Of a DNA stretch of 64,000 bases, positions 2,950 through 48,300 are shown piece after piece. Origin of the DNA: Saccostrea cucullata (taxonomy: Eukaryota); NCBI RefSeq assembly GCF_032062105.1, contig NW_026919036.1, positions 62,001 to 126,000 of the forward strand. Direction: 5' to 3'. The position numbers were made by a program, and so were the translations under genes. How positions within the stretch are numbered: the stretch's first letter is position 1; each line of letters starts with the position of its first letter. Below the pieces are notes generated by a model, which worked only from the letters and a program-made list of their open reading frames with translations, was not told where the DNA came from and searched no databases.

Positions 2950-3590
2950 ACAAATCGACATTTTATATAACGACGATGTACTAGGGTATTATCAAGTGAT
3001 CATAATTACCGGTACTTTCACTCATATGTTTATCCCAGTGAACTTGAAATAAGAGATGCTACATATTCTGCAACAGATTTGGACGTTTTACTGATTATAG
3101 ACAACAAGGGACAACTAACAACTATATATTGTATAACAAACAAGATTACTTCAACTTTTCCATCGTCGTGTAAAATATTCCGTCATCACCTGCATATGTG
3201 TAAACATCTGCCAACTTATTCGATAGACGAAAGCATGTTCTGAGTATTATCAATTTTAAATGGGGCAAGCTACTGACAGAAAAATTGATGTTACAGAGCA
3301 TTCAACAACCGGTATTTCGTAAATTCTTTGGTGTTATAATGACCTTGTTAGCAAATATGACCTCTTAATGGGTTGCAATTTGTGTGACTTGTTTCAACTT
3401 GTTAGGCCTTTGTTTTTAAACTTGATTTTAAGGAATATTCCGTCTTCTGATCAATGTTGGAAGCTCAGAGCGTGGAATGCTAACATCCTAGGCACCTGAA
3501 CCCACCTATGGCCACGGATTCGTGTTTTGTACCTGTTTACAGATTTTTATTGTTTATAGACTATCTGAAATCGATTACTGTTCGTAATTG
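2950..3590 (+). mobile_element. Degenerate Penelope-like retroelement RT 3' fragment
   Basis: Frameshifted traces of RT motifs: ST-F-x-Y-x-DDVL (near 2955), YPSELEI, LD-x-LL-x-ID-x-x-GQL, DYFNFSIV, NIPSSPAY, QLIR; 3' motif CCTAGGCACCTGA-CCCACCT that I recall from bivalve PLE ends. Confidence 0.6.
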
Positions 3591-4265
3591 TCACCTACTA
3601 GTATTTATTTCAAAAGAGAAAAATAATTTTCTTTTATGGTGCGTTAGCAATTTTTAGCCAAAGACCCTCTTGTTATCCAATAATGAAACAACTTGGCTGT
3701 ACGGACATGAAGGTGACGTAGAGGCGTGTTAGACGTTGGTATTTTTAATATATCGGTTATCAGTTCAGTTGGTAAATCTATCAAGTCACCACGACACAAT
3801 GAGATAAAAAATGTGAAGGTTGATTTAATTTTTTTTTAATACGTTGATATCAACTTTTGAGCATTTTTCTCAAGTGTGAACATTTATTAAATAAGATTGT
3901 TTTTCAAATAGATCAATATTATACTCCTGATTATTTTTATGTCATACATTCAACACTAATAATTCAGAATAAAAATATGTATGGTAAGACAAATGCGGGT
4001 CAAAACACTACGACTAAGCCCGTAGAAACAGTTTCGAAAGTAAGGAGGGGGACTTCCCTAAAAAGTTTGGTAAGCAAAAATAAATAAATAAATAAATAAA
4101 CTGCTAAGAGTGGGAGGAATTCTCAAAATAATCTGACAAACAAACGAGTTTTTTTTTTTAAAAGTCAAAAAGGCTAATTGCAATTTATCTTATACTGATA
4201 TACTTGTACTAAAAGGTTTTTTTTTTCAGATCATAATATCACTGTCTTTGTTAATGTCGTATTTA

Positions 4266-4460
4266 GAATGGGTTTAAACAAATTACCCAATGCTCAACTA
4301 ACTCAGTTATCTGTTTATTCTGATTTAGTACCATACCTTTATAACAATAAACGTTTTTTTTATTGAATGGGTTTAAACAAATTACCCAATGCTCAACTAA
4401 CTCAGTTATCTGTTTATTCTGATTTAGTACCATACCTTTATAACAATAAACGTTTTTTTT
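4266..4460. repeat. Near-perfect tandem duplication, ~99-bp unit x2
   Basis: GAATGGGTTTAAACAAATTACCC...AATAAACGTTTTTT at 4266 and again at 4365. Confidence 0.9.
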
Positions 4461-6037
4461 TTTCAATAAAAACTTTTTGGGGAACTCACGAATTCGTTTT
4501 ATCTCATGAGTGGGCAATGTCAATGCAAAACAAATATTATGTAACTAGAAAGGTGCATAATATTTTGAGTCAAGAGTTTATCTCTTCCACAGGTGTATCA
4601 ATGTACATATTTAGAACAAGTTATTTATCCACCTGTACCCATTTGATCTATCCATTTTCAAAGACCTAGAAAACTGGAAATTAGAAAGCTAAAACACAAA
4701 TAGTCCTGTTGAAAGTTCAGTACTTATTTATCTCTCCGTCTTCCTCAAACAACTTTGAGTATAAATCGAATACGCTGCCAAAATAAAATTTTGGAAACAT
4801 TTACCATAATATGAAAGCCACAGCAATGGCGACGTCATTAAGTTTCAGCTAAGTCTCTTTAACAGAACAGATTACTTTTTTAAAAATATCTTAAATTTAT
4901 ACATGTATAGAAATACTAGTTTTCAGATTGCCCTAAAGACTATAAAATTTTATGTTTTGATTTTTCTCAGACTGCGAGAGCTGCCTGGTCTAATCAGATC
5001 GAGTTTGTCTTGACCCTGATTGGGTATGCTGTAGGGCTAGGGAACGTCTGGAGATTTCCGTACCTTGCATACAAAAATGGAGGAGGTAAATTGAGGAAGT
5101 GTTCGAAAAAGTAACATTAATTAGTTATAAACATGGTTCTGAGACCTTGTTGTGAGAAACTTTGACTTCTTTCTGATATAATTTATTACATGAAAATTTG
5201 TTATTTGATTAAAAAACACAAGTCTTACAGACATTTTCTCAAAAGGTGTTTGCTTCGTTTTATCAGAAGTGAACGTTTTCTAGTTAATCCATTCATGTAT
5301 ACACCTTTTCTGGTAAATTTTGTCATCATCCACAAAGTGAAGGAAAATCAATTCTGCTCACTTTGACAGGTGCTTTCCTCATTCCATACTTTGTTTGTCT
5401 GGTCCTTATTGGAATTCCGCTCTTTTTTCTGGAATTATCCTTTGGTCAGTTTGCAAGCCTGGGCCCTATAAGAATATGGGTTGTGAATCCGGCATTCAAA
5501 GGTAGGTCATTTGCGGATGTAACTCCTTCTCATACTTCCAAACACCTGTATGTCTGTACAGATCAATGATTCATAAAGTAATTATTTTATTTACAACCTG
5601 TACTTTTAATGCATTTTTTTTTATTTTCAGGACTTGGGTTTGCCATGACAATTATATCAGCATTAATCGCCCTTTATTACAATGTCGTCATTGCTTGGTG
5701 CTTGTATTACCTGTTCGCATCAATGACGTCATATTTGCCCTGGCAGGATTGCGAAAACGAATGGAACTCGTGCAAGTGTATTGATAAAACCAGAAACTTT
5801 TCCAGTCCAGATCCATGGAATGGAAAAAGACCCGAATGCTGTAATGATATTGTGATCATTTGATGTCTAGCTTCAGTTTTTTATATTGCATACAGTGTAG
5901 GAGTGTTCGAATTCTTTACCGTTTCTTGTCGTCTTTTGCAGTGTCCCAACTCGCAGAAATTGTAAACGCTACCAAGAGAACACCAAGTTCCGAATATTTT
6001 ACGTAAGACGTAGATTACTGTTCTTAAAACTTTTAAA

Positions 6038-6224
6038 TACTGTAGATCACTTAATTTTCGAGAGAAATAAACTCTTTTTGAGATAATTTTCACGAAATGT
6101 GTCATTGTTATATAAGCTTAATTAAGGAATTCTATTATACACGAGAATGAAATTTTCGCGAGCATATCCTCTCACGTAATTACGCGAAAATAAAGTTCTT
6201 GCGAATAAAAAGTGATTTACAGTA
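6038..6224. mobile_element. MITE, Tc1/mariner-like ends
   Basis: TACTGTAGATCACTT ... AAGTGATTTACAGTA terminal inverted repeats with TA ends. Confidence 0.65.
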
Positions 6225-7767
6225 TTTCAATTAACGTCCTTTTATTTTATAAAAAATAAAAGGTTTTGAAATAGTCGTGTCTTGTGTTTATAAATAGGGA
6301 GAAAGTACTCGGTTTTTCAATTTTAAGATTTTTAAATACCAAAAAGAGTGAAATGGGATGTGATTTTGTGTAACTTGCTGCACATTTGTTATTTTTTTTT
6401 ATCCAAAGGGTCGGAAAGGTACACAATGCACTAGTACTCGGTCTTTCAATTTTAAGATTTTTAAATACCAAAAAGATATGAATGAAATGTTTTTTTTTAG
6501 GTCCGAAGACTCATATTTTTTGTTATTTTTTTTATGTAGGTTGTGTACTTCACGGCCATTTTCCCATACATCTTGTTGACAGTTTTGTTGGTTCGCGGAC
6601 TGACTCTGAGCGGATCTCATGAAGGTGTGATGTACTACCTGACCCCCGACTGGGACAAACTCACGAAAGCCAGTGTAAGAAAATGCTCCACTTAGACATT
6701 CAAATTCTTACAATTACATAAAGTCGTCGCCATGAAGAAGCTTTTAACGCCATTTACTGGTTTTAAGGTATGGTCTGATGCAGCAGTGCAGATCTTTTAT
6801 TCTCTCAGTGCGTGTTCAGGTGGATTGATTGCGATGGCGAGCTATAATAAGTTCAACAATAATGTCCTAAGGTCTGTTGTATATCCCCCCGAACATTGAC
6901 GATCAATTTATATAGTAAATGAATGTGCAGATATTTCTGTAGTTAGCATTATTATTCTATAACTGTAATTATTATTTCTAGGGATTCGCTGGTTGTCCCC
7001 TTTATTAATTGTCTTACAAGCTTCTATGCCGGGTTTGTGATCTTCTCAGTACTTGGATTCATGGCAGATTATAAAGGCGTCGCAATGGATAATGTTGTGA
7101 AAGGAGGTACCAAAAACAGATGTAATATTCTTGAAAAAAGAATTCTTATTTAAAATGAAAGCACAAGAAATCATGCTTTTAATATGTCTTGTATTAATAC
7201 TATCTCTCCAGTATATAGGAAGAAAAACGTTTTAAATCTTAACATATACAAACTACAAAATTTAATAAGTTTCAAAGCACAACAGATTATCTTAATTCGA
7301 TAACGCAGATTGCAAAATTTAAAGAAAATCATTGGCTCAGTTTTATTTCTTTCTAGGACCTGGACTTACGTTTGTGGTTTACCCAGAAGCCCTTGCGCAG
7401 ATGCAGGTGGCTCCATTGTGGGCTATTCTATTTTTCTTCATGATGGCCACCCTGGGATTCAGTTCTCAGGTTTATTCTAAACTTTTATTTCAATTACTAA
7501 CTATAGCAAAGCAAATATTATTGCTCTCTTGACAGCTTTTAGAATAGAAATTTTCCACTCATAAGGTTATGAGATCAACTTTATAAAGTGTAAAATGATA
7601 TCTTTCTATAATTTTAGTTTTCAATCACGGAGACAGTTATTACAGGGATTGTGGATGAATTTCCGCATTTCTTCAAAAACAAGAAAAGGTTGATTTTGTT
7701 CCGAGCCGGAATTTGTGGCACTGCATTTCTCCTTGGATTACCGATGACTTGCAGGGTAAGCTATATG

Positions 7768-8220
7768 CACTGGCGGATCCATGGGGGGGGGGGGGCTACG
7801 GGAGTTGCACCCCCCCCCCCTTTGGAGTTGTAAAAAAGTAAGAGAGAGAAAAAAGTTCCATTTTTTTGTTGTTTTTTTACTATAAAAAATGTTAAGTGAA
7901 TGGCTAATGTTGTAATATGTAAAGAAATTCGGTTGTGAAAAGTTCAAAACAAAATGAAACCCCACCCCCTTTTAAAAAATAGGATTTTCAGGTTGGAAGA
8001 TTTATTTTTCTTTCTTTTTAAAAACTTTCCATACAAGTACCCCTTCCCAGGCTGATTAACCTCCCACTTTTAAAAACCATACTCCACCCTGTATCCTATT
8101 GAGTTATTTAACTATGTGTATGTGTACAACGTATGTTATAATAACTCTTTTCCCCTTCACCCCTCTTTGAAAAATCCTTCAACCCCCTCCCCCTTTGAAA
8201 AATTTCTAGATCCGCGCCTG
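7768..8220. mobile_element. MITE inserted 12 bp downstream of a 5' splice site
   Basis: Ends CACTGGCGGATCCA ... TAGATCCGCGCCTG; ATATG direct repeat at 7763-7767 and 8221-8225. Confidence 0.65.
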
Positions 8221-10915
8221 ATATGTATAGTCGGGATTTATTAGTTCCAATCTATAGAAATTTGACAGAATGAAAATGATGTTACTTGTTATTTGTTATA
8301 AAATTTGAATTTGATTATTTGATATAAAAAAAACATCTTCAGAACATCAGGGGTCCCGAGTTTACTCGTGTCCAGGACACCTGACGTATCGAGGTCTCAA
8401 GAAAGCAAAACTGAAGTAACAACTAATAGAGAAAATGTTCAACAACCGAATTCACTTACAAACAGGCCCTAATAATCTTCATACTAATCTTAATGAGTAT
8501 ATTTTATGGTTATTAGATTCACAAATGTCCAATATAGCGTAAGAAAAAAGGTATCTTTCTCGTAAGATTGCACTCAATGAGTAATTTTTCGAACACTTTT
8601 GAAAACAGTAGATTTTTTTATTGGCAGGGTGGAGAATATACTCTCAACCTAATGGACACATTCGTTGGAGGTTTCCCTCTCTTATTTGTCGGATTATTTG
8701 AGATCATCGCCATTATCTATATCTATGGTAAGTAGGATTTGAATGTCATTTGTCCATTAAACTGACATAGACATTTGATGTGTGTAAAAGAGTTTAAAAT
8801 TCAAAATTAACAACTTTCAGGATTTTTCCGCTTTAAGAGAGATATCGAGATGATGCTGGGTTCTAACATTGTCATCAACATATTCTTCGGCTACTTTGCG
8901 ACCATGTGGCTGTTGATTTCACCCTTGGCACTACTGGTAAACTCATATGTACTACATGTATCTATTATGAGATAAACTTTCTCAATTTATATATATTGAT
9001 AAATATTTATTCATCAAAGATTGGGCCGACGAAGGTCCATGTGGAGAAACGCTGAACCAAAATCACTATAGACATTTCATAGTTCTACTGTAGATGACAT
9101 TGCAAATAAGATGTACACAGTATTTTTGTAATTTTGTTTAAAATCATTTTTTCTTCAAATATTTGAACTGTTTGATTAGTGTTATTCTACCTGAAAAACT
9201 TTTGATAAATATACTGAGTCAAAAATTACATTTTCGAACAGGCTGTGATAATTTTCAAAGCTATTCAGACCAAACCTGCCACAGACGGAAGTTACGTTTA
9301 TCCAGACTACGGTCAAGCTCTGGGCTGGCTTATGGTACTGGCACCATTGATATGGATTCCAGTCATCTTCTTCTTCGAGGCCTTCAGAAATGGTCTTGGA
9401 AAGGTATGATTTGATTATCTTGTTCTCTATATAAACATTTTCACCCTTTTTTTCTATAGAATAAATAAAATAAAATCGATTGAGTTTCCACTGAAATGTT
9501 CCTTGTGATGAGATGTATGTAAATGGCAATCTTATCTCCGCGAATAACACTATCTTTAGAATATTTGCAGTCGAGAATACTTCCAAGTTTAAACAATTAA
9601 AAGAAATAATTTTTTAAGTCGATAAATATTCTGTCTGAAAACCTGCTGCATTATCAGAATTCCAGTGCAATATCGAATGAGGTTCTTATCATTTTTTTGT
9701 TCTCAAGTTACTGATCAAAATTACCTCTCCTGAAAAGAATTGGGGACCAGCTTTGCCAGAAAATCAGATGGGAAGATACAGCGAACAAAACAAAGCTAGA
9801 AGCGAGATGAAAAACGGAACCAACGGTTACATTAAAAGTCAATCCCAACCTCCAATGGAAAAATACACAGCATTCCAAACTACCGTTGTCACACCAAATA
9901 TGGAAATCACACCAAATGGGAAACCAGTGCAACATACAGTGAAGATAGATCATGAAGAACAGAATGGACAGGCAAGAGATAAAGAAGTAGTGGAAAATGG
10001 AACATCGACAGTGGACCCTCAGGAACCGAATGCTCAGTTCAGTAATCCAACGTTTGAAAATGATGAGGCTCAGGTAACCAATACTGTACAATACTAAGAG
10101 GGACAGTTTTTATGAATTGTCAAGAGCAGTTGTTTGAAATCTCTGAATAGTCAGATGGAAGTGAAACTAACTGTAAATAGATTCCGTTGAGCATTTACAG
10201 TCTCTTATACTTCAAACACATTGTAGATATTTTCATCGACTTGGTGAATGGTTTGCTTTCAGGTTATAGTACCCATATTAACGTGTTGATTCTTGTATAT
10301 CCATGTAACCTCATCAACTTAAGATGTCTACGTGTATATTTTATTTCAAATTCTCAAACAGTTTATCTTATTTCACGTTACCAGTATTTTTTTATTAAAC
10401 TGTTTTTAAAGAATTTATTGTCAAATTCGCCAGGAATAGTCCATAGTATATCTAACACATGAAATTATCTATGTCACTGTGTTGTAATCTCGTTCCCAGT
10501 GTTATGGAAGAAATATACTAAGTACATGGAAAGTATGAAATACTGGCAACAAGATATTCTTTTAAAAGAATGGAATGTTAAACGGAATAATTTGTCCATT
10601 TGTATGTCCAAAACACGTGTATTTGAAAGAATCTTAAAATTGAAATAATTTATATATATTAATATTTTTTGATGAAGCTTCTAAATTCTGCTGATAAATG
10701 TTTAGCTAATTGGAATATTCTTTATTCACATACAACTTATCTTAAAATGTTTGATCTTATTGAATGAAACTTTAATGAAAAAACCCAAACTCACAAATAA
10801 ATAGATAGATCTTTAATTATTATCAAAATTGATTAACTTTAACACAGGAATTCTTCATTTATACATCGTTAGAGTCTATATATATGGAGTTGTACGCTGC
10901 AGGGCAATTTTTCTT

Positions 10916-13900
10916 TCATCTGAATCCAAGGAACTTTTTGATTTTCCTGCTAATACTACTTCTCTTTTTTACAGTTACCTGAAAAGAAAATATGAGAGAC
11001 ACGTGAATTTTTAATTGCACTTACAAATTAATGGGATACAAATGTTTTGTATTGTTATTTACTTTGGATGCTATAATTGCAAGAACTTACCACGTCTTTT
11101 TCTACAGATTCATTTGTAAACGAGTCAAGCACATCAGTTGATTTCTCAGGAATACTGGGGTTTTTTGCTTTTTTGTTTGACTGCAGATTCCACTCACTCT
11201 ATTTAAAAAAAAGAAGTTTTACTCTCAAATTGCTCAAGCATAATAATTAAATTACGTATAAATTATAACTCTTTCCAGTTAATGTTTATACATGTATACT
11301 TCAATGAACGTACCTTAAATTCTACCACTCCAAAAAGAAAGAGTTTTCTAGGAATAAAGCAGCTGTCATTTTCATCTTTTTCATTGCATTCAAACTGTAA
11401 AAAATAATCAAAAAATGAATTAATCCAGTAAATAAATAATTTGTTGCTTATAAAATATATATTGTATAATAACTGGCATTTTATTTTTGTTTTAATCAGA
11501 TGAAATAAACATTTCTCATCTTTTAACCCTTTTAGTTTCATGTTATTAGATTGATTCAACTGTTAGTTGCAAATTGCAAATCTGTACATATTGCATGTTA
11601 TAATACATAGAAAAAGGGACAATTTTAATTGACAAACTAACAAGTAACAACACTAATGATTCTTCAAAAAATGTTTTACATTGTTTCTGTTCTACACCTA
11701 CTAAGACTATTAGTCTTTTCCTTACCTCTGACTTTATCTGCTGTGTTTCCATTTTGCTACATATATCTTTCAAGTCTTTGGTTTCCTTGTCAGTGCCAAT
11801 TTTGGCTTTCAATGGTTGAGACATATTTTGGGTTTTGCTGTTTAATATTAAAAAAACTTCACTTTAGTACCAACATATAAAGGGACATTTAAAAGTAAAA
11901 AAAATATTCCACAACATACAAATGTACAAGTAATTGTGAAAAGGGACTCATTTATCTATTAGGCATATATACATGTAATTTAACATTATTACAATCAAAT
12001 GTCAACAATTGATTATACTATGAAGTTAATACCTGGCATTGTCAGGAGCTATCTCTGGATTTGCTCTGCACTCTTCAGTCACTCTCTGCTGGTGTTCTGT
12101 GTCCTTTTGTAAGGTCTGGTTCAAAATGAAAGACACCTGTAAATAAAATATTCGTATATAAAATTGATACTTTGGGATCTCCAAAAAAAGTTTGTATGAC
12201 ATATACCTGTACTTGCATGTAATTACTCAAGCATTTTATATAGTTATAAACATATAGATTTTATAAATGTATCCATACCTTTGTTTCTCTTTCTTCTTCT
12301 TCTACTTTCTCTGACCAATTGTACCCAAACTTAAGTATTTCTAGTTTTTCCTCCTAAAATTATAACAGCCAAAATAAGATATTTTACAAAGAAACTAACA
12401 TCACTTTAGTTAAGTACATTAAAAGGTAGAAGTTTTCAATCTGGAAAGTTCACGGATAGCTTAAATAGTTTCTAGAAAATGACATTTTTCATTATCTTTC
12501 AGTAAATTTCTTGAATTAAACAGTATCATTAAAACATAACATCAGATCTACTTACCAAATTAGTGACTGGCCCCTCGCCGAAATCCAAGATTGTCTCTCT
12601 TTCATAATAAAAAAAAAAGTAAACATTTAATCTTACATGTAACTTGAAGCCACTGTTTTATATACACTAGATTTACAAATTTTACATTCTAAATAGGAAA
12701 GAAACATTTGAAGGAACAAGTATCCAGTACAAATGTAATACTCAAATAAACTATTTTTCAAAGCTATTTCAGTCTGAGAGAAAAAGTGTTACCTTGGGAT
12801 ATCATTTCTTTCCTCTCTGGGAATCTTTACTTTGGATTTGACCTCCATTTTGTTCATCTGTTCAACTGTTGGTTCATTGCCTTCCTAGAAATCAAATTTA
12901 TAAAATTACACTTAAGGTACATTGATACTCTGATAAAAGAGATAACTCTTAATGACATATATGCCTATTATTCCTTTACATATTTTCCAACTTGAAGTGC
13001 CTTTTTTGTCCAATTTTGCCCCGCAAGCTATGCTATAATTGTTTGTATTTTACATATAAAATACATTTCTTTTGGAAAATCATCAAGGTTCAAGCAACAT
13101 TTTATACATATGTATGAGTGAGCAGAGGGTTTATGAACTTTAAATAGAATGTTTTGCTATAAAGTCAATACCAATGAGATTTACTGTAATCGACATACAA
13201 GATCATTAAATCTTGAACTGTAGTAAAATTCTATTATTTCACACAAAAAATTACGAAGTACTACATATACATGTATATTACTCAATATTACTCAGTATTT
13301 AATTACCAATCACTTATACTCTAATTGACAGTACACATTCAGTTTGTTAAATTAAAATTCAGTCAACCTCAGTCAAATCGTTTTACCTTTGCTTCTTTCT
13401 CTTCCTCTTCAACCCTCTCAGCCCAGGAGTAGGTGAACTGTAGTATTTGTAATTTTTCATCCTAAAAATTTAAGATTCAAAGTTTAAACGGATGAAATCA
13501 TATAGTAAAAAAAAAAAGTTAATAAGTCGGTACTTGATTGGGTTGTATTCGATAATCATATGCATTTAAATCAATACCAACAATAAAAGCATTGTTGATT
13601 ACTATTATCATAACAACATAATTTCTGGGGAAACTTTTTTTTCAGTATTAATTCTTCAAAAATAAATACCTCGAATAAAAAAAATAGATACACCAAAAGA
13701 AAGCAGATCTATGGTTTCCTTACCAAATTTCTCACGGGCCTATCGCCAAAATCCAAGACTGGCTCTCTACAACAGTGAAAGCATGTAATGAAACTTTCAT
13801 ACTGAAAATGTCAAATTTACTGGATGGTGCCAAATGTAAATTTAATGTAACATATTCAATATTTAGAGAAAAAGATAAGTAGTAGAATTACATTTTTCAT

Positions 13901-14554
13901 GGTAAAACTAGAATCCTAAAGACTCACAGAGTTCTAGTCTTACCTGGGAATTTCCTTTGTCTCTGTTGTTAAAGTATTTAATTGACATTCATTCTTAAGT
14001 TCATCTTTATCCTCTAAAACTGGTTCGGTGACTTCCTAGAAAAAGATATAAAGAAGACGTTTATTCAAACTTAAAAAAGGGAAATCAATCATATTGAAAA
14101 ACAATTGACACATGTTTAAATGTGTAAGGGGAGTTATAATAAATCTATTGTGAACGACATGTAAGTCTTGTCAGAGTTAAACGTGTAACTATGTTGTTGC
14201 TCTAGACAAATTTCTAGATTTGCATAATTAATGTACCTTCATAAATCTTTCTTGCTTTTCAACTTCTTCAACCCAAGTATAGCCGAATTTGAGAATCTGT
14301 AGCTTCGTATCCTGAAAACATCAAGAAGTTTTTTTTAATTCAAAAGCAGATGTTTTGGTAATTTATGTACGACCAATTTCTTTGAACGAATTACTTCATC
14401 TGTATTTTTTGCAATGAATTAGTTGAAAAAGGTAGTTACCAGTATTCGTCGTTAAAAAAATCCTTCATAATATTGATGTGCAAGATGTGAAAAATGCCAA
14501 AATACTTACAACATCCTTAACTGGCTCACTTCCAAAATCCAATACAACGTCCAT
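10916..14554 (-). CDS. Uncharacterised 335-aa acidic protein with three ~70-aa tandem repeats (LDFG-x-x-PV ... KL-x-IL-x-F-x-Y-x-W-x-E-x-VE) and a basic amphipathic C-terminus
   Basis: 13 GT-AG exons join in frame with no stop: 14554-14510, 14311-14237, 14035-13944, 13766-13724, 13461-13387, 12884-12793, 12598-12556, 12353-12279, 12136-12033, 11837-11726, 11394-11314, 11198-11091, 10978-10916 (1008 nt). Starts MDVVLDFGSEPVKDV, ends KKRSSISRKIKKFLGFR*. Confidence 0.85.
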
Positions 14555-15709
14555 GATTGTCTACAATCAAAAACGAATATTTATGAATATACGTTTTCTC
14601 TTGTCAAGAAAAAAAAACAAGAAAAGAGTGATTTAGTCGTGAAATTTACCGCTAATATGTCTGCAATCTGCATCCACTTTTGTTATAGTGATAATTATTA
14701 CGTCACTTTAATTGTTACGTTTAAGTTTGTGTGTGTTGCTTTCATGACGTCATACACAATATTTTATTTTATCCAAATCATACTTTTATTATGCCAGGAA
14801 CGTTGGTGTAAAATTGTTGAAAGGACAAGAGGAGATATCTTGTATCTTACATGTACTAAGTAAATTAAACAATAATTCTAACCAAAAACTACTTATATGA
14901 ATTATTAAAGGATCTCCAAAAAATATTTCCATTCCTAGAATTGTAGACCCAAAATACCGATTTCATTTTTTTGTTGTTGTACAACTATTTTCAACCAAAA
15001 CGTAGCAAAATTTACGAGTACGTGTTATAATACAAGATTTAAAAAAAATAATTATAGAGTGCTAGGAAAGTGCCTCATTAATTGTAATTTACAGTTTTAG
15101 TTAAATGGACATTGACGCATGTGAACGCATAAAGACATATTTATTTATACCTATAAGAAAAAAATTGCATGCTAATCTGCCAGTAATATGGGTGTATAAA
15201 TGCTTTTTAAAAACTTACTAGTTAACGAAACAAGAAAGAAATTAATTTCTAGTCAAAAACTCGAAATAGTTTTTTCATATTATTCGTTCCAGGAACTGTA
15301 ATTAGTTTCAGAAGATGGGAAAAATTGGCTTAAATCTACATGTACCTCTGAAGAAACAATGTCATTAAGTTGATCGAGGGGTTATTTCATCAAAGATGTT
15401 CTACGGGAATCAAGGATTTACTTTCGTCAAATACCGTGGTTTATTGTATGCAAATGTGGTTAGGTCATATTATACAGTGCTTTAGATTTAAACAGATACA
15501 GAAACTTTGGTTTAACACATAAAATATAGATGTTTCCATTCCTTTTCTGGGCACAAGGAATGCTACACATGTATTTACGCGTAAATTTTTGATACACAAG
15601 TTTAAGAGCGGTAGCAAGAATATGATGATTGTTCTATTTTTCTATATCAAAAAAAAAAAGCCATTGCTCTTGAATCTCAAACTATCATGTAGTATATAGA
15701 TCTGTTTAT

Positions 15710-15790
15710 ACTCACGCTTTACGCCGCCCTTTTGTTTGGTTGATAAGATAATGTATATATATTTCGTCATAAAGCATGACGTCACAATGC
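15710..15790 (-). promoter_or_regulatory. Candidate promoter and tiny non-coding first exon of the repeat-protein gene
   Basis: On -: CRE TGACGTCA (15777-15784), TATA-like ATATATATA (~15754-15762), then donor GTGAGT at 15715; acceptor TAG before 14560; second CRE at 14745-14752. Confidence 0.35.
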
Positions 15791-16297
15791 TCTTTGTGAT
15801 AATAGTTCGGCAAACCTCGGATGTTTCCGTCACCTACATCAAAGGTGCGACTAGGCAATGTGCTATATGTAGTGTTTAGTTAAAAATATCATAATAGCAT
15901 CAGCAAATAGTAATTTCTATATGGTCGCCTCAATAAACAGAAAAACAGAAAGTACTTTAATTTTATTTACATGGAACACACTCAGTATATATAACTTGAT
16001 TATAAATGTATAATAACTATTAAAAGTTTATACAATAATGTCAAGATCTACTTCCCTTTGGTAAATGAATATGTTACACCTGCTTTTATTTTGATTTCCT
16101 TAAATGCCTTCTGTTTCATTCAGAAGGATATTGCTGGTAAAATACTTCTAAATGACAGGCATATTGTTATAATCGCGCTCTGTAAATAAAGCTGAATTTT
16201 CCACGTCTCCGCATTCAGTCCTTTGATCCTAATCACGATTAATTAAGAGGGTCACGGAGACAGAGAACAGTTTGTTTTTTTAATTCTGGGTGACTTA

Positions 16298-19200
16298 TTA
16301 GAACTTTGTGGCAGTTGTGTCCCCTGCTTCTATTACGTAAGCTTTATTATCATATTCTTTGGATTGCATTTTCATCATGTCAACAGAGTAATCGTTTGCA
16401 GGGGCGGATCCATTTGAAGTGATGTCATTGAAAGCGACGGAATAACGACCTGTTCTGTTCTCAGGTAAGGCGGGTCCCCAGTCTTCTGTTGGCTGCAAAA
16501 AAATAAAACAAAATCAGAAATGAAAATTCGTGGATGAAATTTGAAAAGTAGTCCTTCTTCAAAAATATCGAATGTTGTGTTTGACTGTGATGATATACAT
16601 GTATATTACCTTTCCAAGCCCCTTTTTACAGCTGTAGTATATAAACCAACCAGGAATTCCAATCAAGCACGTGACTTGAATTAACCAGAAGATCACCTGA
16701 CCACTGTCTGGGTATAAATATCCATCACTTTCTAGAGGTTTCGTTTGGGCAATTTTAAAGATAATTACAGCCTGTAAAAAGAAAGAAGAAAGAAAAATTA
16801 CATCATTCCGACTATTAATTTATTGAAATAATAGTGTTCATTAACTTCTTTTAACATTAAAAATTAAAAAAAATAAAATAAAAATTAAATATAAAACGAA
16901 ATATGTTTTAGTTGCCAGATGTATCAGATGTAATAATTTAAGAAGTTGTAAATATCAAATTGAAATTTTAAATTAAAAATACTAAACGTCGCCCGCATAT
17001 GGCGTATGGGGTAGTAGAGCGTCTGTTCTAGAGTCGCAAAGCAAGGAGTTAATTCTTATATCGAGGGTTCTTATCCCACTGTGGGACCTGGAGACCGGTC
17101 CTTCGGATGAGACCGTATCCTAAACCGAGGTCCCGTGTCGCAGTAGGTGCTGGCACAAAAAAGATCCCTTCCTGCTCAATGGCCCTCAGAGCCAAACTGT
17201 ATAGAACAAATTTGTAGCTCTCCATCGGCAAGTGGTGGCGTCTCTATATGAGTGAAAAATTCTCGAGAGGGACATATTCAATCAAAATAATAAACTAACA
17301 ATCAGACTGTAATTTTTCTTTCAAAAAAGGTGGCGAATTTCGAAGATATGTAGATTTTTAAACTTTTTGTTTGGAAACTGACCAATAGCGCCAACGGAGA
17401 AATAAGCAACCAACAGGCTCCAAAATACCAGAAGCAGGGCTTGACACAGAGTCGGTCACCAATCATCATCTCAATGTCCCGCTTAAATCTGAAGAATCCT
17501 GCAAATGATTATATATTTTATTGATTTCAAAATATTTAACAAAATATTACTGTTTTATTTACATTTCAAGCATCTAATATGTTAACAAAATATTAACTGT
17601 ATAAAACGGTACTTATTCTGGTCCTTGGACTTACCATACACGTAACATAAGAGAATCAGCTCAAAGAATCCGACAAACAGCAGCGGGAATCCACCGACAG
17701 CATTGTCCACCAGAGTCAGCATGTAATCACCTCCCTTAATAGACCAAAAAATAGTTTTCTAATTAGTGTTGATCACAGATCCAAAAATAGAACAAGGACT
17801 ACAACTATATAAATTATCAGTATTTCACTAGATCAATTTTATATATTATACTTTAGTTAGTCTTACTCTAGTTGTCATAGGCAAGCCCAAAAGAAACCCT
17901 GTCATGCAGATTCCAAACCGGAAACCCAGAACTCGCCATTTTGATCGAGAGAGGGCCGGAAATTCATCCAGAAGACCAGTCATTACCGTTTCAACAATGG
18001 AGAACTAGTAAATAACATTATAAATTGAATGATTGTTTTAAGAAATAAACAACGACTAATTGTTGCGTTATAATACCTCAGTTTTAATATCGATACATTT
18101 GTATAATTTATAAAATATTACCGCTGAGCTAAACCCTAAAGTCGACATCATGAAGAAAAACAATATTGACCATAACGGCGCTACCGGCATTTGAGCCAAT
18201 CCCTCCGGATAGACAATGAACACAAGACCAGGACCTAGAATATATTGAATTAAACTGAATTGTGCAATTTAGAAATATTTACGGCGCAGAAAATACATTT
18301 TCCAAAAATAGAAACTCGGAACTTCAAGATATTCTTTAATGGATATTTAACTTTAAATATTTAAAGAAACACACAGACTTTAATAGTCTGCCTAGAGGTG
18401 AACACTTAATTATCATTTTAAACAAGAGTTGTAAAAGTCCTAGCAAGTTTGTTTTCATATGATAAATATGGTTTACCTCCCTTGGCCACTTCCGGAACCG
18501 TGACGCCTTTAGCGTATGCCATAAATCCCAAAACTGAGAAGATGACAAAACCCGCATAAAAACTCGTTAGGCAATTAATTAATGGCACCAAAAACGTATC
18601 TCTGAAAAAACAACAATACCGTTTGTTGAATTTATCACTAATAAGGAAAACAACTAGTATTTTAATGATTTCCGTTCATTAAACGCCATTCTCGCAACCT
18701 CTTGGATTCTGTTTCAAATCATATCTAACAGTCACGGGTTGCCTCAAAACCCCTAAAGTTGTGAAGATGGTACAAATTCTTGCTTAAATACAACAGAAAT
18801 GCACCGAGCAACACCGTACATTCCATTTAGTCATTTAGTGATTTTTTTTTTCTAAATTCATGCCACGATGAGCATACAATAACATTGGACCAAAAAAAAA
18901 TAAACATCATGTGCTTGGTTTGCTAGAAAGGTACATGTAAATCAATGAGTTTTGAAATTATATTTACAAGTACATGTAGTAACCTAAAATATTGTCCTTT
19001 CCTGACCACAGGTACTTGTGGACAGGACCCTCTCCCCCCTCCCCGATATTCAACCCCGGGGCTTATTGGACATTTTTTTTTTCAAAAATTATGTTTATTA
19101 CACTTATTCATCATGTGTACAATATGAAAAAATCCTCAAAACCCAAAACAATCGCTCCGCAAAAAAATACCCCACTAATGTATAGTGGGGTATTTTTTTT

Positions 19201-22200
19201 GTGGAGCGATTGTTTTGGGGTTTTAACGATTTTTTCATATTGTACACATGATGAATAAGTGTAATAAATAAAATTTTTGAGAAAAAATGTCCAATAAGCC
19301 CCGGGGTTGAATATTGGGGGTGGGGGGTCCTGTCCACAAGTACCTGTGTTCCTGACGTAAGAAAAATGCCATGTTCACAATTTTGGTATTTACTGTAAGT
19401 ATGCATACCTCAGAACATTGTTATCAAACTTATTGAAGCTGGCCATTGCTATAAGTCCTCCCTGACAAGCGCTGAGCGAGTAGAAAATTTGGACTGCAGC
19501 ATCCGACCATACCTAGAAAAAGCAGGTGTAAGTATTATTTTTTTTATAATAGGACAATTCACAGGTAAGCTTGGACATTCAGTAAGGCTTGGCACTCTCG
19601 ACGTTACATAATTTAGCATCTGAAATTTACAAAGGTTTCATTCACTGTTGAAATATACATGGGATAAAAAATTCGGACAGATGCTAATTAGTGTATCGAA
19701 TAACCATTAACATTGTCTCGTCCGGCAAAGATGTGGGGCTTAAGTCGTTTCATTGTTGTCAATAACAATATAATGATGTTATTAATTTCTTAACCAGTGA
19801 GAATCTATTCGCCAATTGACAGACGCTAATTACATAGAACCGAGAATGCTGCACCTTACTGAAAGTCCAAGCTTATATGAGAATTGTTCTAAATGTGTCC
19901 TAAATACATTCCATTTTATTCATGACTTAGTATGAAAAGAAATGTTTATATTTTATGTGTGCATCGTGTCTTCTTTAAAGTAACATTAGGCTATTCCAAG
20001 TTTTTTCTATGTTTAGCGTCCGCGTGCGCCTTGGTTTTTGACACCCCATACAAGAAAAAACACACAACATCAGGTGTCCAAAAATTGATTAATTAAGTTG
20101 ATTTTTTAAAATTTTGTCACTTTCTCCGAATAATTCTGTACAGTAAGTTGCACTGGGTGAATTTAAAGCATTTAATCCTTTGTTTTTGCTCAAGAATAGA
20201 TATTTCTACTACTAAAGCTGTTTATTTAGATCACATCATTTGAAGGGCGTCATTTTAATGACTTTTAAGCCTGTGTTTTATGTTTTGGCTTGTGTGTTTT
20301 TGCGAATAGGTAGGTAAGTTTTTGAAAGATGGGTGGACGCTAAACAGAGAAAAAACTTGGAATGGCCTTATCTATTGGTTGCAAGAATACATTGCAAATT
20401 TTGTTCCTTTAGAGCAATCAGCTTACGCTGGCATCCGTGAGTTTATCCAAATCGGGAGTTAAGTAGAAATCTATTCCTTGTTTGTAACCATCTAGTGTAA
20501 GTCCCCGGATGAGAAGAGCTGTGAGTAAAACGTATGGGAAAATAGCTGTAAAGTACACAACCTGGTAAATAAAACATTCAAATTTACTTAGAATTTTAGT
20601 TAGGAACTTTTTAAGTTGCTCTTTTTGAAAAACGGCTGTTTTACTTCAGAAGCACATAATTTTACAATACGTACTTTTCCAAGTGTTTTGATACCCTTGG
20701 ACAATACTATAAAAATTATCGTCCAGGCTAGAAGGTTACACAGAGTTACGTCCCATTTCACACCTCCGGTGGACTCGAATCCGTCCGTGATCTCCAAAAC
20801 CCGACGTCTGAGAAAAGGGGAGAGAAATCTTTCAACATTCCTTCATTCTTAGTATTTATAATTGTTAGAAATGAGTTGTTTTGTTTTTTTAAAATCTTTT
20901 AAGGAAGCTCTAAACAGTGCTCACTGAAGAGTTCTATTCAAGTGGTAGTTTTAAGAAGATGAACTTATCTGCCTTTTGATGAAAGAAATAAACGGAAAAC
21001 TACAATAAAAGACACGATTTGGAATGCAGTAATATACTCACTTCTTACATTTTTTCAGTGTTATGAGCTTCCTTTATGTAAAAATACGGTTTTATATATA
21101 TACTTCGTTTGCTTATGTATACCTGAAATACTCTTCACTGACAGAAACTCCGGTTGTGTTTACAGGATAATCAAAAGTCACTGAAAAGATACAAATATTA
21201 TAATGTAAAGAATTTTCCTAGTTTAATCCTAGACCGCAGAAAAAATTCAAGTGAAAAGAACATATCAAGAAATTAATGCTTGTATTTTTGAATATTATAC
21301 TTTCATGTAAATTACTTGAATCTGATTCGTCGAGAAACATTTGATAAAAAACACTACTACCCGCTGAATAATGAAGCCACGCCCTCCTGCGTAGCAACAG
21401 TCAACATTGCTTGACGACGGGTGGTATTCCAAAAAATTAGCGACTGCGCGGAATTTATGCGCGCACGGTTCACTCTAATATGTATTTGTATAAAACATTC
21501 AGTATAATATAATAAATATTGCATGTAGTTGAGTGTAACATTGAAAATTTTCACCCCTCGAAAACCATTGTCAACCTCGGCTGCGCCTCGGTTGACAATG
21601 GTTTTCTTGGGGTGAAAATTTTCAATGTTACACTCAACTACATGCAATATTTATATAATATTTCTTGTCTTTGGATTTAATATTTCCCCCTAAAAATAGA
21701 ATTCTTCTTACAGCACTCATTGCGTGCTCCAAGCCAGGGATCAGGCAGTGAAAAATTCCGTTTTCCGTCTTGACACAGACAGGTATTCCAGTTGTTGTCG
21801 CAATCTTGCCACGGTAGATATGACGTCATCGAAGCAAAGAAGTAGTACAAGCACCAAGCAATAATGACCACATAATACAGGGCTATCCCCATTGATACTG
21901 TTATCATGGCAAACCCCAATCCTATTTAAAAGATGAAACTGAATAAATATATAGAGATAACTAAATCTAAAATATGTTATGTAATTTTTTTGCACTAGAA
22001 AAAAGTATTTTAAGCATATATTGTCTTATAAGAAATTTAAGATTCGTTTTCCCTCTGTTTATTTACTCATATAAATATTGCTTTAGCGCTTATGATTTTC
22101 CAAGAGAAAATTTAAATTAGTGAAGGCACACATTGAAAGATATCGTCTCTTTGTTTCACAATTTTATCAAAATATCAGATATTTATTTCTTTGAGAGTAA

Positions 22201-25200
22201 GCTTCCCTATCAGAGGATATATTGAACCTTAATTTTTTTTTTTTTTTTAAATATTTGCCTTTCATCAAAAGATTTATTTTCCATATGTTAACGGGTCCGA
22301 GACTGGCAAACTGTCCAAATGCGATTTCTAGATAAAACAGGGGGATTCCAATGAACACCAGACAGATGAAGTACGGGATGAGAAAAGCCCCTGAAAGTAA
22401 CAAAGAATTACAAGGTTAAATAACATCTTATTGAAATTCAACACAATTAATGTCGCATGTTACATATAACTGATCTTATTACCATGATACAGTACTTTAT
22501 GGTCCGTAGTCGTGCCTGGATTAAGAGGAAAATACTATATGCAGGGTCTTGTACAAAATTTGATTACATACGACTTTTATTTGTGTTTTAAAATAAAGAC
22601 ATTATTCGGTAACCAAAATTGGATAATGCATACTCGTGAATATAAATGTCATCCTATGAACTTAAATTTACACATTCGTCACACCGTTGTACAGATCGGG
22701 AAAATTGCGTGTTTTTGCATATGATGACAATTCTATTGTGCATTGTAAGTAGATTTAATGACATTTACACTTACCTCCTCCGTTTCTAAATGCTAAGTAG
22801 GGAAATCTCCAGACATTACCCAGACCGACAGCAAACCCCACACAAGTCAAAATAAACTCCACAGGGTTCGACCACTCCGCTCTCTACAATATAATTTTTA
22901 AAAACTTAAATGATCAACCAATTTAAAAAAAATATTTTTATACCCCCCGCTTGAAAAGTGGGAGGGTATACTGTAATCGGTATGTCCGTCTGTACGTCTA
23001 GCTGACGTCCATCCGTCTGTCTGTTACGCTTTGGGGTACCAATCTCTTATCCGCAACTCCTCTTATACCACTGAGTAAAATTTAATGAAACTTTCATAGA
23101 AACTTTATTACATATTGCCATTGTGACCTACTATTTTACTTTTTGATCCGACACATATTTTGGGTTTCCCGGCCACAGCAAAACATGGACTTTTCGATTA
23201 TAATCATATGGGAGGGTGGGTATCATTTAGTGGGCTCATTGCTCACAGTACCTCTAGTTTTTTATTGTGAACGCTTTTAAAGTGTGGCAGAAATTCACAT
23301 GTTCCCACGTTTTATGCTTTTTGTGTTCATTGTCATTTCTTTGTAAGTTCTGATTAGAAAAAAAAAAGATTCATTGCTTACAACATGCAGTATTATTCGC
23401 AAAGGTCGTGTATCGTCATATTTCAAAAGACCACAGTAATTGCAGCAGTGGAGTTAGAAATATTTCAAACTCTATCTCAGAATTAAGGTCAGGTCATATA
23501 TTATTCTCCCCCCCCCGGTCATTAACTTATGAGAAGATAAAATCTTCAAGGTCATTGAAATTCCAACAAGCTCCTTTTAAATTAAAGAATGAGATCTGAG
23601 AAGTTGTGATTGACATGTTGGTAGTTAACGCCTACCCGATTAATCTTTGTGTAAAATTCGCGATCAGATGGATCGCTTTTATGTATTCCAAAATACAATG
23701 TCGTAATTATGTTAAAATATATACATATAAAATGCATTGTTCTCGATACTTTGTAAATATATATTTGTGTTGAATTTTTTTTCAATAAAACCTATTTTGT
23801 AGGCATCCCTTCAAAACAGTTCTGTTCTAAATAACTTTGTTACCACACAGAAGTTTGTTTTATTTGCAGACTTCGGAAAGTGACATTTAATAGAACATTG
23901 TTACTTTTTCTTGTTAGTCACTTATTGGTGTCTTGGTTAATTTGAAAAAAATAAAAAAAGAAATGTTTAATTTTTTTTGGCCGAACCTGAAGATTTTAAC
24001 GATCGTAAATTTAGATGTTCTTATGTATTTTGGTAACTTTTGACTGACGCCAATTAATAATCTACCTCTTCTGCGCCTTGACAATTTGTAGACAGGTATA
24101 TTTATATACATGTATATGAAAAGTACCATATATCACAAACTAACTGCTGAAATTTATACATTTATACACTTTAAAATTTATTAAACTAAGTGACTGATTT
24201 GTCCTTTATAGTTTATAATTAGCAACGTATAAAATTTATTTCTAAATCTAAATAGTCTATATAGTCGAAGGATAGTCTATCGCATTATATGGGGGATAAG
24301 CACTCCTCGATGGATTTCGTTTATAACATTGCCACTGATTTATGGGTGATTGAGATGACCGAATGAATGACAATTTTTGACTTATCTCAACTCTATAAAG
24401 ATAGTTACCCGGAACACAGCCATCGACATTCAAGAACAAAACTTTCTATTTGAGCACTGAATGTACTTGTACATGTTTTGTACATGTTGCAGAGTGGTTA
24501 AAAAAGTATACCAAGTGTATATAATGCTAATATTGGTTCTTTTTTGGGGTCTTTTAAACGTTTTAAATTTTGTCCCGCTCTTTTCGATTCCAATTCTGCA
24601 GGTTATTTAAGAAGCAGTTGGCAGACGGCAAACAAATGATAACAGGAAATTGATTGATTTTCAAACATTGCTTTTCAAAGCCCCTACAAGAAGTGTTTAT
24701 TACTACCCAAAACCCAACTGATAAGACAGGTAAAAAGGTTAAGTAATCCTGAAAGGGCATGGTGATAAATATTTGAAAATAACTCCTTGTTAATATTTCA
24801 TTTTCCTTTCTTCGTCCTTGATTTGTGGGGAAAATAAAACATTTCGAATATATACGTCGTCTAATAAATCTGTAGTACTTGGTGTCAATGATAAAAACAT
24901 GCACTTTAAGTATATTACACCAACATTACAGTGAAATGTTTATATGTATAAAAATGTCAGTGCATATATATACGGGTTGATTTTGTCGGTAAGGGCTTTG
25001 TCGGTAAATGGTGCCATAAATGAGTCCAAATTAACGCAAAAGTATACAATAATGAACTATAAATTTTTGTTGAAAAAAGTTGTTTTAACGGATGAAAAGT
25101 CTGTATTTACATTCATATCTTTTCACGGATTCGAAATCAGTATTTTGACGCGAATTATTGTCTTTGAAAATTATCGAAATAATTTATTTTTGACTTGTTT

Positions 25201-45380: not shown

Positions 45381-48300
45381 ATGGCGTCATTCGATCCCAA
45401 CGATCCGGATATGAAGTACCTGGCTGTCGACAGGAAAGCTCTGATGAAGGAGCAGACTGTCCCATTTGACGGCAAAAAGATGTGCTGGATTCCCGACGAG
45501 AAGGAAGGTTTCTTGGCCGCTGAGATCCAGTCCACCAAAGGAGAGGAGATCACTGTCAAGACCATTGAAAGCCAAGAGGTAAACAAAATAAACAAACAAA
45601 AAAACAAACAACAATAATCATTAAAAAAACAAATTCCTTGGTTTAAAAACGAAAAAAGCTTAATGATTTTCAATTGAATTATCAAAAATTTTCGGAGAAT
45701 ATCGAGCAAAGACTGTTTTAGACCATAATATTAACTTGAAAAAGTCTAAACCTTTGTGTAACTTTTGTTCCAATATTGTCATTAGACCAGGACAGTGAAG
45801 AAGGATGACATTCAGCAAATGAATCCACCCAAATACGAGAAAATTGACGACATGGCCAACATGACCTACCTGAACGAAGCCTCTGTGTTGCACAACTTGA
45901 GATCCCGTTACAAGTCTATGTTGATCTACGTAAGTCTCATAAAACATGTAAAAATCGCTCATAATATCCATTTCACATAATTTGTTTATTTTGTATATAT
46001 ATTTTAAATATTTTGTTTTTTCTTGTTATTAGACCTATTCCGGACTTTTCTGCGTTGCCGTCAACCCCTATAAGCGCCTCCCCATCTACGGCCAGGCCCT
46101 GGTCGACAAATACAGGGGTAAGAGGAAGACTGAAATGCCTCCCCATTTGTATTCCGTGGCTGACAACGCTTACCAATTCATGGTACAAGATCGTGAGAAT
46201 CAGTCCATGTTGATTACGTAAGTTTGCCTTCTTTTTTTTTTTTTTTTTTTTAGAAAAATCATTTTTTAAATTATTTTTTTTTTTAAATCTGCGTCTTGAA
46301 GCTCAAATTGAGATAATGGATTTTCTAATTTAATTCTCAGTGGTGAGTCTGGAGCCGGAAAAACTGAAAACACCAAAAAGGTCATTCAGTATTTCGCCCT
46401 CGTGGCAGCTGGTCAGTCCAAAAAGGATGATCCAGAGGAAAAGCCAAAGGACGACAAGAAGGTAGCGAAAATGTTTCCTCTTAAAATATTCCTTCAATAT
46501 AATAATAATTATAACTGTAAAAGTCTTTATCGGTATGATAATGGCATTATATATGTACTTAAATTGCTAATTTATATTTTTTTTTTACTTTTTTCTTTTT
46601 CCCCTCTCCCTTTTCTTCATAAATTTTCCGATTATCCTTCCTTAAATCCTCTCAAACTATTCTGATCGTTTTCTCTCCTAAATTCGCCAAATTTCCTTTC
46701 AATCCTCTTCTCGGTTCCTCCCCTATTTTCTTGACCCTCCAAACAACAGGGAACCCTAGAGGACCAGATCGTGCAGGCTAACCCAGTACTTGAGGCTTAC
46801 GGAAACGCCAAGACTGTCCGTAACAACAACTCCTCACGTTTTGTAAGTTTATTTTTAAATCCGTTATCATCCACACTTTGTGCTGAATTTATCTTTCATT
46901 AAACCTAAACCATAAAACAACTCAACCCATATTTTTTTTATTTTGATTTTTGGACTTAAAATGATGTCATTTTCCCGATATTTTAAAAATGAACGAATTT
47001 ATCACCTACCTCAGTGCATGGTTAATGGTTTACGTATTTGCCCTCCTTGATGTTCCAAAAAAAGACTTAGGAGATACAAAACCTGTAATAAAATTTACAC
47101 CTTTTTTATTTTTAATTCCAAAATAATGTCATGGTTTTTGATGTGAAAATAACCTTGCATGTATTTTACCTTTTTGGAATATTCGTTTAACCATAAACGA
47201 ATAATACAGCACTGACAAACTTTGATCCACCGGTGTGTTTTTAACAAATTCCTACTCTCCCTCGTCACTAGGATAATCTGGATCCTCAGATATCCGCCCA
47301 CCTTCCTAAGCCGCTCCCCCATCCTCACTCCCTCCTGATTTTGTCTCCTCTCATTTTGAGGATGCAGTGAACTGTAAGTAAGAAAGTTTTCCTCATTGTC
47401 AATCAGTTTTAGTTTCAATTTAGCTAAGTATTTAATATATTTATTACGTTTTTAAAATAAATTTTTATGGTTAGAAAATACAGTTTTTACACGACTGTAC
47501 TTTCATTTTAATGATTTTCACTTAGCCTTTTTCTTTCGTAAACAGGGAAAATTCGTCCGTATCCACTTCGGTCCCACAGGAAAAATTGCAGGAGCCGACA
47601 TTGAAACCTGTAAGTTTATATTTTATTTGTTAGTTTAAAATCATTTTTAAATCCTTATTGAAATTTTAGTTATTAAAAATACATGTTTAAATACATAGAC
47701 CTGCTGGAGAAATCTCGTGTCACTTACCAACAAACTGTTGAGAGAAACTACCACATCTTCTACCAGCTCCTGTCTAACGCCATTCCAGAGCTCAATGGTA
47801 GGTGTCTTCTTCAATGTTTATGAAACTTATTTTTTCCACTTTTAAATGATAACTCTATAAAGTCATAAATAAATCGTACCAGAATATTTTTTACTCCGTA
47901 TTACATGCAGCATTACACTACCGGTAGTTACTCATCATCACCAAAATGGAGAGGACATAAAAAGGTGGTCGTGAAATTTGCTGTCTAATCCGTCAATGGT
48001 ATAAAAAATATAATATGTTATCGTCTCATTCACGTCATATAAATCAAGTAATGGCATTCTGCTTACAGAACTTTTATTGGTTTCTCCTGATCCGGCCCTC
48101 TACAGCTTTATCAATCAGGGTGCACTCACTGTCGATGGCATTAATGATGTAGAGGAAATGAAAATGATGGACGTACGTTGTAATAAGCCCATTCCCGTCT
48201 TGAATACTCTTTTCTTCTTTCAATATAGAAACCTGGTTCCAAAAGAAATCTCTCTACTCTGAATCTCTCTACTCTGAAGAGATTTAAAAATCCCACCAAA

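Follow-up and report, generated by a model that had tools for sequence, protein, structure and literature searches.

A spliced oyster gene with a triplicated SBM-like repeat and its undescribed, expanded family

Between two SLC6 paralogues of the oyster Saccostrea cucullata, 13 short exons had been predicted from the DNA letters to splice into a hidden orphan gene carrying a triplicated domain of no recognised family. This locus raises the question of whether the exons form a genuine coding gene, whether that gene stands alone, and what its repeats might do. The stretch that was analysed, called the window here, comprises 64,000 nucleotides of contig NW_026919036.1 (positions 62,001 to 126,000, forward strand), and all positions below are counted from its first letter.

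Gene structure, relatives and selection

The 13 exons run on the minus strand from 14554 to 10916, each 43-112 nt long, and all 12 introns start with GT and end with AG in the window sequence (Table 1). Joined together they gave 1008 nt encoding 335 aa followed by a single terminal stop, and the resulting protein is acidic (pI 4.9) with 15.5% Glu and 12.2% Lys. Exons 1 to 8 are built from a cassette present three times. Its exon A has 43 or 45 nt and carries an LDFG motif, exon B has 75 nt in phase 0-0, and exon C, the linker, has 92 nt. The three repeats aligned as had been quoted and derive from this triplicated A+B+C cassette. Poly(A)-type hexamers were found at 10817, 10776 and 10726.

The RefSeq model P0051 (LOC134277992, S. 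cucullata, labelled 'uncharacterized') was identical to residues 1-253 of the joined model. After residue 253 it used a different terminal exon of three codons at 11636 and stopped before exons 11-13. RefSeq also added an upstream exon 0 (14673-14650), whose in-frame ATG and donor were conserved in all 4 copies compared, and the gene thus has at least 14 exons and encodes 345 aa. The 13 predicted exons therefore stood, with the amendments that exon 0 had been overlooked and that exon 1 really starts at 14560. The 3' end formed by exons 11-13 is more likely the main form because the acceptor used by P0051 was unconserved in the paralogues, while exons 11-13 were conserved and used in the models of relatives. 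Both the exon 11-13 end and the 11636 end may exist.

Table 1. Positions of the gene, its putative promoter sites and its neighbours in the window
Feature	Position	Strand	Remarks
SLC6 paralogue A, convergent neighbour	5363..10097 (span of exons checked)	+	Pfam SNF; synteny with L040
Exon 13, encoding the C-terminal helix (SISRKIKKFLGFR; basic, amphipathic) and the stop	10916..10978	-	
Exon 12 (variable linker)	11091..11198	-	
Exon 11: acidic run and F-x-P-R-[KR]-L-F-[LF]-F-G-x3-F-K, family-wide motif	11314..11394	-	
Alternative terminal exon, 3 codons, RefSeq model P0051	11625..11636	-	acceptor not kept in paralogues
Exon 10 (variable linker)	11726..11837	-	missing in S. echinata orthologue
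Exon 9 (variable linker)	12033..12136	-	missing in S. echinata orthologue; both paralogues have exon 9
Exon 8 (B3), SBM-like WSEKVEEEE	12279..12353	-	
Exon 7 (A3)	12556..12598	-	
Exon 6 (linker C2)	12793..12884	-	
Interspersed repeat, ~235 bp, high-copy, in intron 5	12910..13146	.	best 40 of 1918 candidates at 86-90% identity
Exon 5 (B2), SBM-like WAERVEEEE	13387..13461	-	
Exon 4 (A2)	13724..13766	-	
Exon 3 (linker C1)	13944..14035	-	
Exon 2 (B1)	14237..14311	-	KLxILKFxY and SBM-like helix WVEEVEKQE; Val at W+1, atypical for SBM
Exon 1 (A1, LDFG motif)	14510..14560	-	acceptor 14560; second ATG at 14554, strong Kozak context
Exon 0, coding part (MQIADILA)	14650..14673	-	ATG and GT donor kept in L011, L014, L040; in RefSeq models P0051, P0002
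Second CRE-like site of pair, TGACGTAA	14698..14705	-	
Perfect CRE/ATF palindrome TGACGTCA, putative promoter element	14745..14752	-	~70 nt upstream of exon-0 ATG
SLC6 paralogue B, upstream neighbour, same strand	16298..22403 (span of exons checked)	-	Pfam SNF; synteny with L040

Relatives of the gene were compared over the full locus. In S. echinata the protein P0002 (LOC133192929) is encoded between two SLC6 genes in the same orientations, and it is the orthologue of the window gene; it has 11 of the 13 exons, lacking exons 9-10, and keeps the splice sites and frames. A DNA search of the oyster's own genome returned two collinear paralogues, C19422 and C17556, at 67-78% identity and with all 13 exons in both. 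These also keep splice sites and frames, save that exon 5 of C17556 lacks 10 nt through a deletion, the one exception to exon length differences among the copies being multiples of three. At this copy (L014:5976-6040) the RefSeq model P0018 begins downstream at a Met in exon 6, and the copy may be a pseudogene, a truncated form or an assembly error. The high-copy repeat in intron 5 (12910-13146) was without counterpart in the orthologue or the paralogues, where the alignments show a gap, and it has no part in the gene's function.

Selection was then measured between repeats and between copies. Repeats within the gene differed by a pS of 0.59-0.88, which is near saturation, versus a pN of only 0.18-0.29. 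Against the orthologue and the two paralogues, the A+B core gave a dN/dS of 0.14-0.17 (p<1e-8) as compared to 0.46-0.73 for the linkers, bearing out the earlier suggestion of purifying selection on a core of about 40 aa. Over the same three copies dN/dS was 0.11-0.23 for the B exons, 0.13-0.19 for exon 11 and 0.11-0.29 for exon 13. These values show selection on the repeats and on the motif in exon 11; for the C-terminus they do so less strongly. Position-matched repeats were closer across species than repeats within the gene, which places the triplication before the species split. Judged by this comparative evidence for its junctions, with the predicted exons recovered exactly and their sites and frames kept in relatives, the locus is a functional, spliced protein-coding gene.

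Both flanks matched the Pfam family SNF, confirming the location between two SLC6 paralogues. Within SLC6 copy A a stretch (6275-6520) looks disturbed and locally duplicated. Elsewhere the window holds a LINE-like ORF of 691 aa with a reverse transcriptase domain (27642-29717, plus strand), exons with a C1q domain on both strands (31931-35200), a myosin heavy chain gene with Myosin_head and rod exons (45381-57000, plus strand), and tandem arrays at 38525-39147, 58051-58579 and 60289-61417 with units of 148/296, 21 and 168 bp, the last of which we take to resemble the oyster Cg170-type satellite.

Shared promoter sites and an oyster family

The assembly was scanned with a profile of exon B at E<=2.1e-4, and clusters of 1-4 repeats were counted as loci. 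This returned at least 146 matches on 72 contigs in at least about 85 clusters, a figure for which the haploid locus number is uncertain because several contigs look like haplotype duplicates. An independent profile of the exon-11 motif gave 91 matches in the S. cucullata genome. The hidden orphan of the original prediction is therefore a real coding gene that is neither lone nor unannotated, having about 85 loci in the assembly and being for the most part predicted by RefSeq.

A full HMMER scan of 1.84 billion representative proteins returned 33, of which 2 were repeat artefacts. Of the matches that were looked up, those with an organism name came only from S. cucullata, S. echinata, and Crassostrea/Magallana gigas and angulata; four short ones were metagenome fragments. 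Two word-index protein searches were blank outside oysters among the 8000 candidates that each covered, a result that is weak as low-complexity words saturated them, and the HMMER scan is the better evidence of restriction. With named matches confined to Saccostrea and Magallana/Crassostrea, the family appears to be restricted to oysters, in line with the original suggestion of a possibly lineage-restricted domain, and to have few members in Magallana.

Members share an architecture that begins with 1-4 repeats at the N-terminus and continues with a middle part that is variable and charged and an acidic stretch containing FxPR[KR]LF[LF]FG..FK, before it closes with basic amphipathic residues such as RKIKKFLG. 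They include LOC134277992 (S. cucullata), LOC133192929 (S. echinata), and LOC105337229 and LOC105339272 (Magallana gigas), all four of which have the A+B repeat or repeats, the PR[KR]LFLF motif and the basic C-terminal helix. They are automatic predictions; where RefSeq gives them a family name at all, it misleads (tropomyosin-like, titin homolog, golgin-like). Look-ups of the literature and supplements by LOC ids found no paper naming the genes and no tissue data. No Pfam match above the curated cut-off came from the exons, from the repeat or from ten members searched at full length, in line with the claim that the family was not a recognised one; two proteins of a divergent subfamily passed Pfam cut-offs only by summing repeated weak matches, and some M. 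gigas members carry a precomputed PF26541 label. Foldseek returned no structural match to the family, the ESM Atlas no cluster, and a PDB search with the exon-11 motif no match. Among unannotated expansions in a farmed oyster genus, this undescribed family is one of the larger.

Variants of the architecture were also seen. In a divergent S. cucullata subfamily, that of P0031, P0038 and P0040, repeats of 54 aa (ILKFDRPWCEMVEE) occur up to six times with near identity, and the C-terminus has a Cys-Cys beside a basic helix; these proteins are possibly lipid-anchored. P0011, P0024, P0052 and P0053 carry RLF(L/V)CG and a Cys cluster in place of PRKLFLFG, a possible palmitoylation site. At L037 (G000:C12488:21900-22600, minus strand) tandem units of ~135-140 bp contain a B-like exon without exon A, some of them frameshifted.

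The two closest paralogues, each on a different contig from the window gene, retain broken 3' remnants of its SLC6 neighbours, and their boundaries differ, which indicates DNA-level copying out of the SLC6-flanked locus of the window. Examination of 30 kb around each of the two revealed no shared termini and no transposase or reverse transcriptase in the duplicated stretch. The family has spread by DNA-level duplication, and these two copies show no signs of a dedicated mobile element. Of 3 loci with long open frames that were inspected as possible retrocopies, none was intronless.

Upstream of exon 0 two CRE-like sites form a pair that keeps its place and distance in the orthologue, both paralogues and distant members, and this conservation across the family marks a shared promoter. 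The palindrome TGACGTCA occurred 5 times in the window as compared to 0.59 expected, and the block 14756-14678 had matches at 26 loci. The conserved pair suggests CREB/ATF/CREM-type control; that this would be linked to a germ line or stress response role is a guess. At L034 and L035 (G000:C14497 near 499470-502538 and C22777 near 3004-6072) a separate CRE pair precedes every A+B unit of the tandem, indicating that promoter and 5' exons were duplicated together, and transcription or translation there may also start at internal repeats. Another TGACGTCA (15777-15784) lies in a non-coding block at 15750-15850 that is 89% identical to paralogue C17556; the block may be a distal element, or it may belong to a repeat recurring near 62159-62564.

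The SBM-like helix of the repeat

AlphaFold predicted the repeat as an extended segment followed by a short KLxIL helix and a second helix starting from the Trp (W36 and W106 of P0002, W28 of a single repeat), with no packed core and a pTM of 0.23-0.35. Three repeats are present as claimed; the word domain is doubtful given this lack of a globular core, and the repeats are better read as a string of linear motifs.

The second helix has the pattern W-x3-V-E-x2-E, with the four residues about 96-100% conserved. This resembles the SBM (SLIP1-binding motif) found in SLBP, DBP5 and eIF3g, in which contacts are made by Trp94, Val98, Glu99 and Glu102 (W0, +4, +5 and +8), Asp96 occupies +2, and a small residue (Gly or Ala) at +1 faces a shallow pocket (PMC3763545). 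The metazoan SBM binders are PAIP1, CTIF and SLIP1, and coronavirus NSP3 is also reported to target the SBM groove (bioRxiv 10.64898/2026.07.31.742013). Fifty-two family repeats were aligned by the upstream KLxILxF alone, and so independently of the Trp, and showed W0 in 98%, V/M+4 in 100%, E+5 in 98%, E/D+8 in 98% and D/E+2 in 87%, with +3 and +6 varying. In the window gene the contacts W0, V+4 and the acidic +5 and +8 were present in 3 of 3 repeats. The residue at W+1 is Val in repeat 1, Ala in repeat 2 and Ser in repeat 3; across the family it is A/S in 75% and V/I in 21%, and about half of first repeats have Val or Ile. Loose SBM matches in the model numbered 3 as compared to 0.017 expected after shuffling, although the three are not independent, and the i, i+4, i+5, i+8 spacing is generic for one helix face.

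The exon-B profile was run against 177,635 PDB sequences, and at E<=10 matched only the SLBP peptide 4jhk_C (E 0.15), eIF3g 6ybs_o (1.6) and the DBP5 peptide 4jhj_C (7.7), which are exactly the three SBM proteins of PMC3763545, none of them significant singly. The longer A+B profile scored APOBEC2 (E 0.067, gapped) better than the SLBP peptide (E 0.32), which was followed closely by OspC, and exon 5 alone had no match in the PDB. The oyster's own SLBP (DWAEEMEIRD) and eIF3g (SWAEQVEQVE) retain SBM-like motifs. Derivation of the repeat from their exons was rejected on flanks and on phases, which are 0-0 for the repeat exon but 2-2 for the SLBP exon and 2-1 for that of eIF3g in oyster, leaving no sign of exon capture from those genes. 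A MIF4G search of the genome did not find SLIP1, CTIF or PAIP1 exons, and the exons that it returned are ones we take to be eIF4G, DAP5 and UPF2. The PAM2 and eIF4E-binding consensus sequences do not fit the family motifs, and PRKLF is reminiscent of an RxL cyclin-docking motif.

The oyster repeats are like the SBM of SLBP, DBP5 and eIF3g in having a W-x3-V-[ED]-x2-E helix that starts from the Trp in a disordered acidic context. However, a protein with a known SBM has just one, next to a domain that binds RNA or acts as a helicase, and its gene is conserved and single-copy, whereas the oyster proteins have 1-4 (up to six in a divergent subfamily) without a folded domain, add an LDFG..KLxILKFxY extension, and form a lineage-specific family of dozens. 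LDFG and KLxILKFxY are as conserved as the SBM positions and have no counterpart in known SBMs. Half of the residues that are conserved fall outside the SBM. Membership in the SBM class is not established, since the +1 rule fails for one repeat and binding to the adaptors is a prediction.

Possible function and competing readings

The gene product is acidic and, by prediction, largely disordered, carrying an array of short linear motifs. As regards binding, location and tissue, we infer the following scheme. By its SBM-like helix (W0, V+4, E+5, E+8), each repeat would fit into the groove in which SLIP1/MIF4GD, CTIF or PAIP1, adaptors of the MIF4G type, hold an SBM. Having three such helices but neither an RNA-binding nor a catalytic domain, the protein would either link these adaptors to one another or draw them away from SLBP, DDX19 and eIF3g. 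Translation tied to histone mRNA, the cap-binding complex or poly(A) would be tuned in this way. An additional contact surface would come from the LDFG and ILKFxY residues, PRKLFLFG would serve as a site for a second partner, and the tail, basic and amphipathic, would anchor the protein to a membrane or in the nucleus. That the protein is such a disordered multivalent ligand, which adjusts specialised translation by cross-linking or titrating SLIP1, CTIF or PAIP1, has in our estimate an even chance of being right.

The scheme has to be weighed against a reading in which the whole 40-aa repeat (LDFG..ILKFxYxW..VE) is an extended module for another partner, resembles an SBM by chance as an acidic Trp helix, and serves a multivalent scaffold outside translation control. 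In its favour, the residues LDF, K, IL, F and Y vary no more than the SBM positions do, the PDB scores are not significant with unrelated proteins scoring alike, and many first repeats have Val at W+1. The B-exon profile nevertheless retrieved the three known SBMs and nothing else, and the invariant positions coincide with the reported contacts, so we consider another partner rather unlikely. A structural germ-cell or cytoskeleton- or membrane-associated family, for example of sperm, whose repeats self-associate or bind a filament and whose basic tail anchors to the membrane, is more improbable still. CREM drives spermatid genes with CRE sites in mammals, and the CRE pairs here resemble those of such genes; the long helical repeat middles of the Magallana members P0030 and P0046, the conserved basic amphipathic C-terminus and the Cys clusters of two subfamilies point the same way. 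A structural role fits poorly with middles that are dispensable, exons 9-10 having been lost in the orthologue and the linkers being near neutral, and with conservation confined to short motifs.

Copy number could also reflect transposition and not host benefit, the gene being a selfish or passenger one spread by a mobile element. This would account for about 85 scattered loci, for damaged copies, and for the two closest paralogues sitting on other contigs with broken 3' SLC6 scraps. We give it very little credence, as these two copies differ in their boundaries, have no common termini and include no transposase or reverse transcriptase in the duplicated stretch, while the locus is syntenic in two species and the copies, at 67-78% identity, are old and evolve under purifying selection.

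Carried over to the family, the SBM-like reading leads to a broader and tentative proposal, to which we give somewhat less than an even chance. Oysters would have evolved and massively expanded stand-alone multivalent SBM proteins, host decoys or cross-linkers of the SLIP1/CTIF/PAIP1 groove that act as a CRE-controlled, lineage-specific translation switch in germ line, stress or infection. The established SBM proteins number only three and are single-copy with one motif each, and dozens of domain-less proteins with repeated SBMs would, if this is true, constitute a new mode of regulation of the SLIP1/CTIF/PAIP1 hub, with natural sequence variants that would help to define the SBM and its receptor specificity. 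Even with a different partner, the repeat is undescribed and under strong conservation, the family has a promoter signature in common, and short peptides would allow a test.
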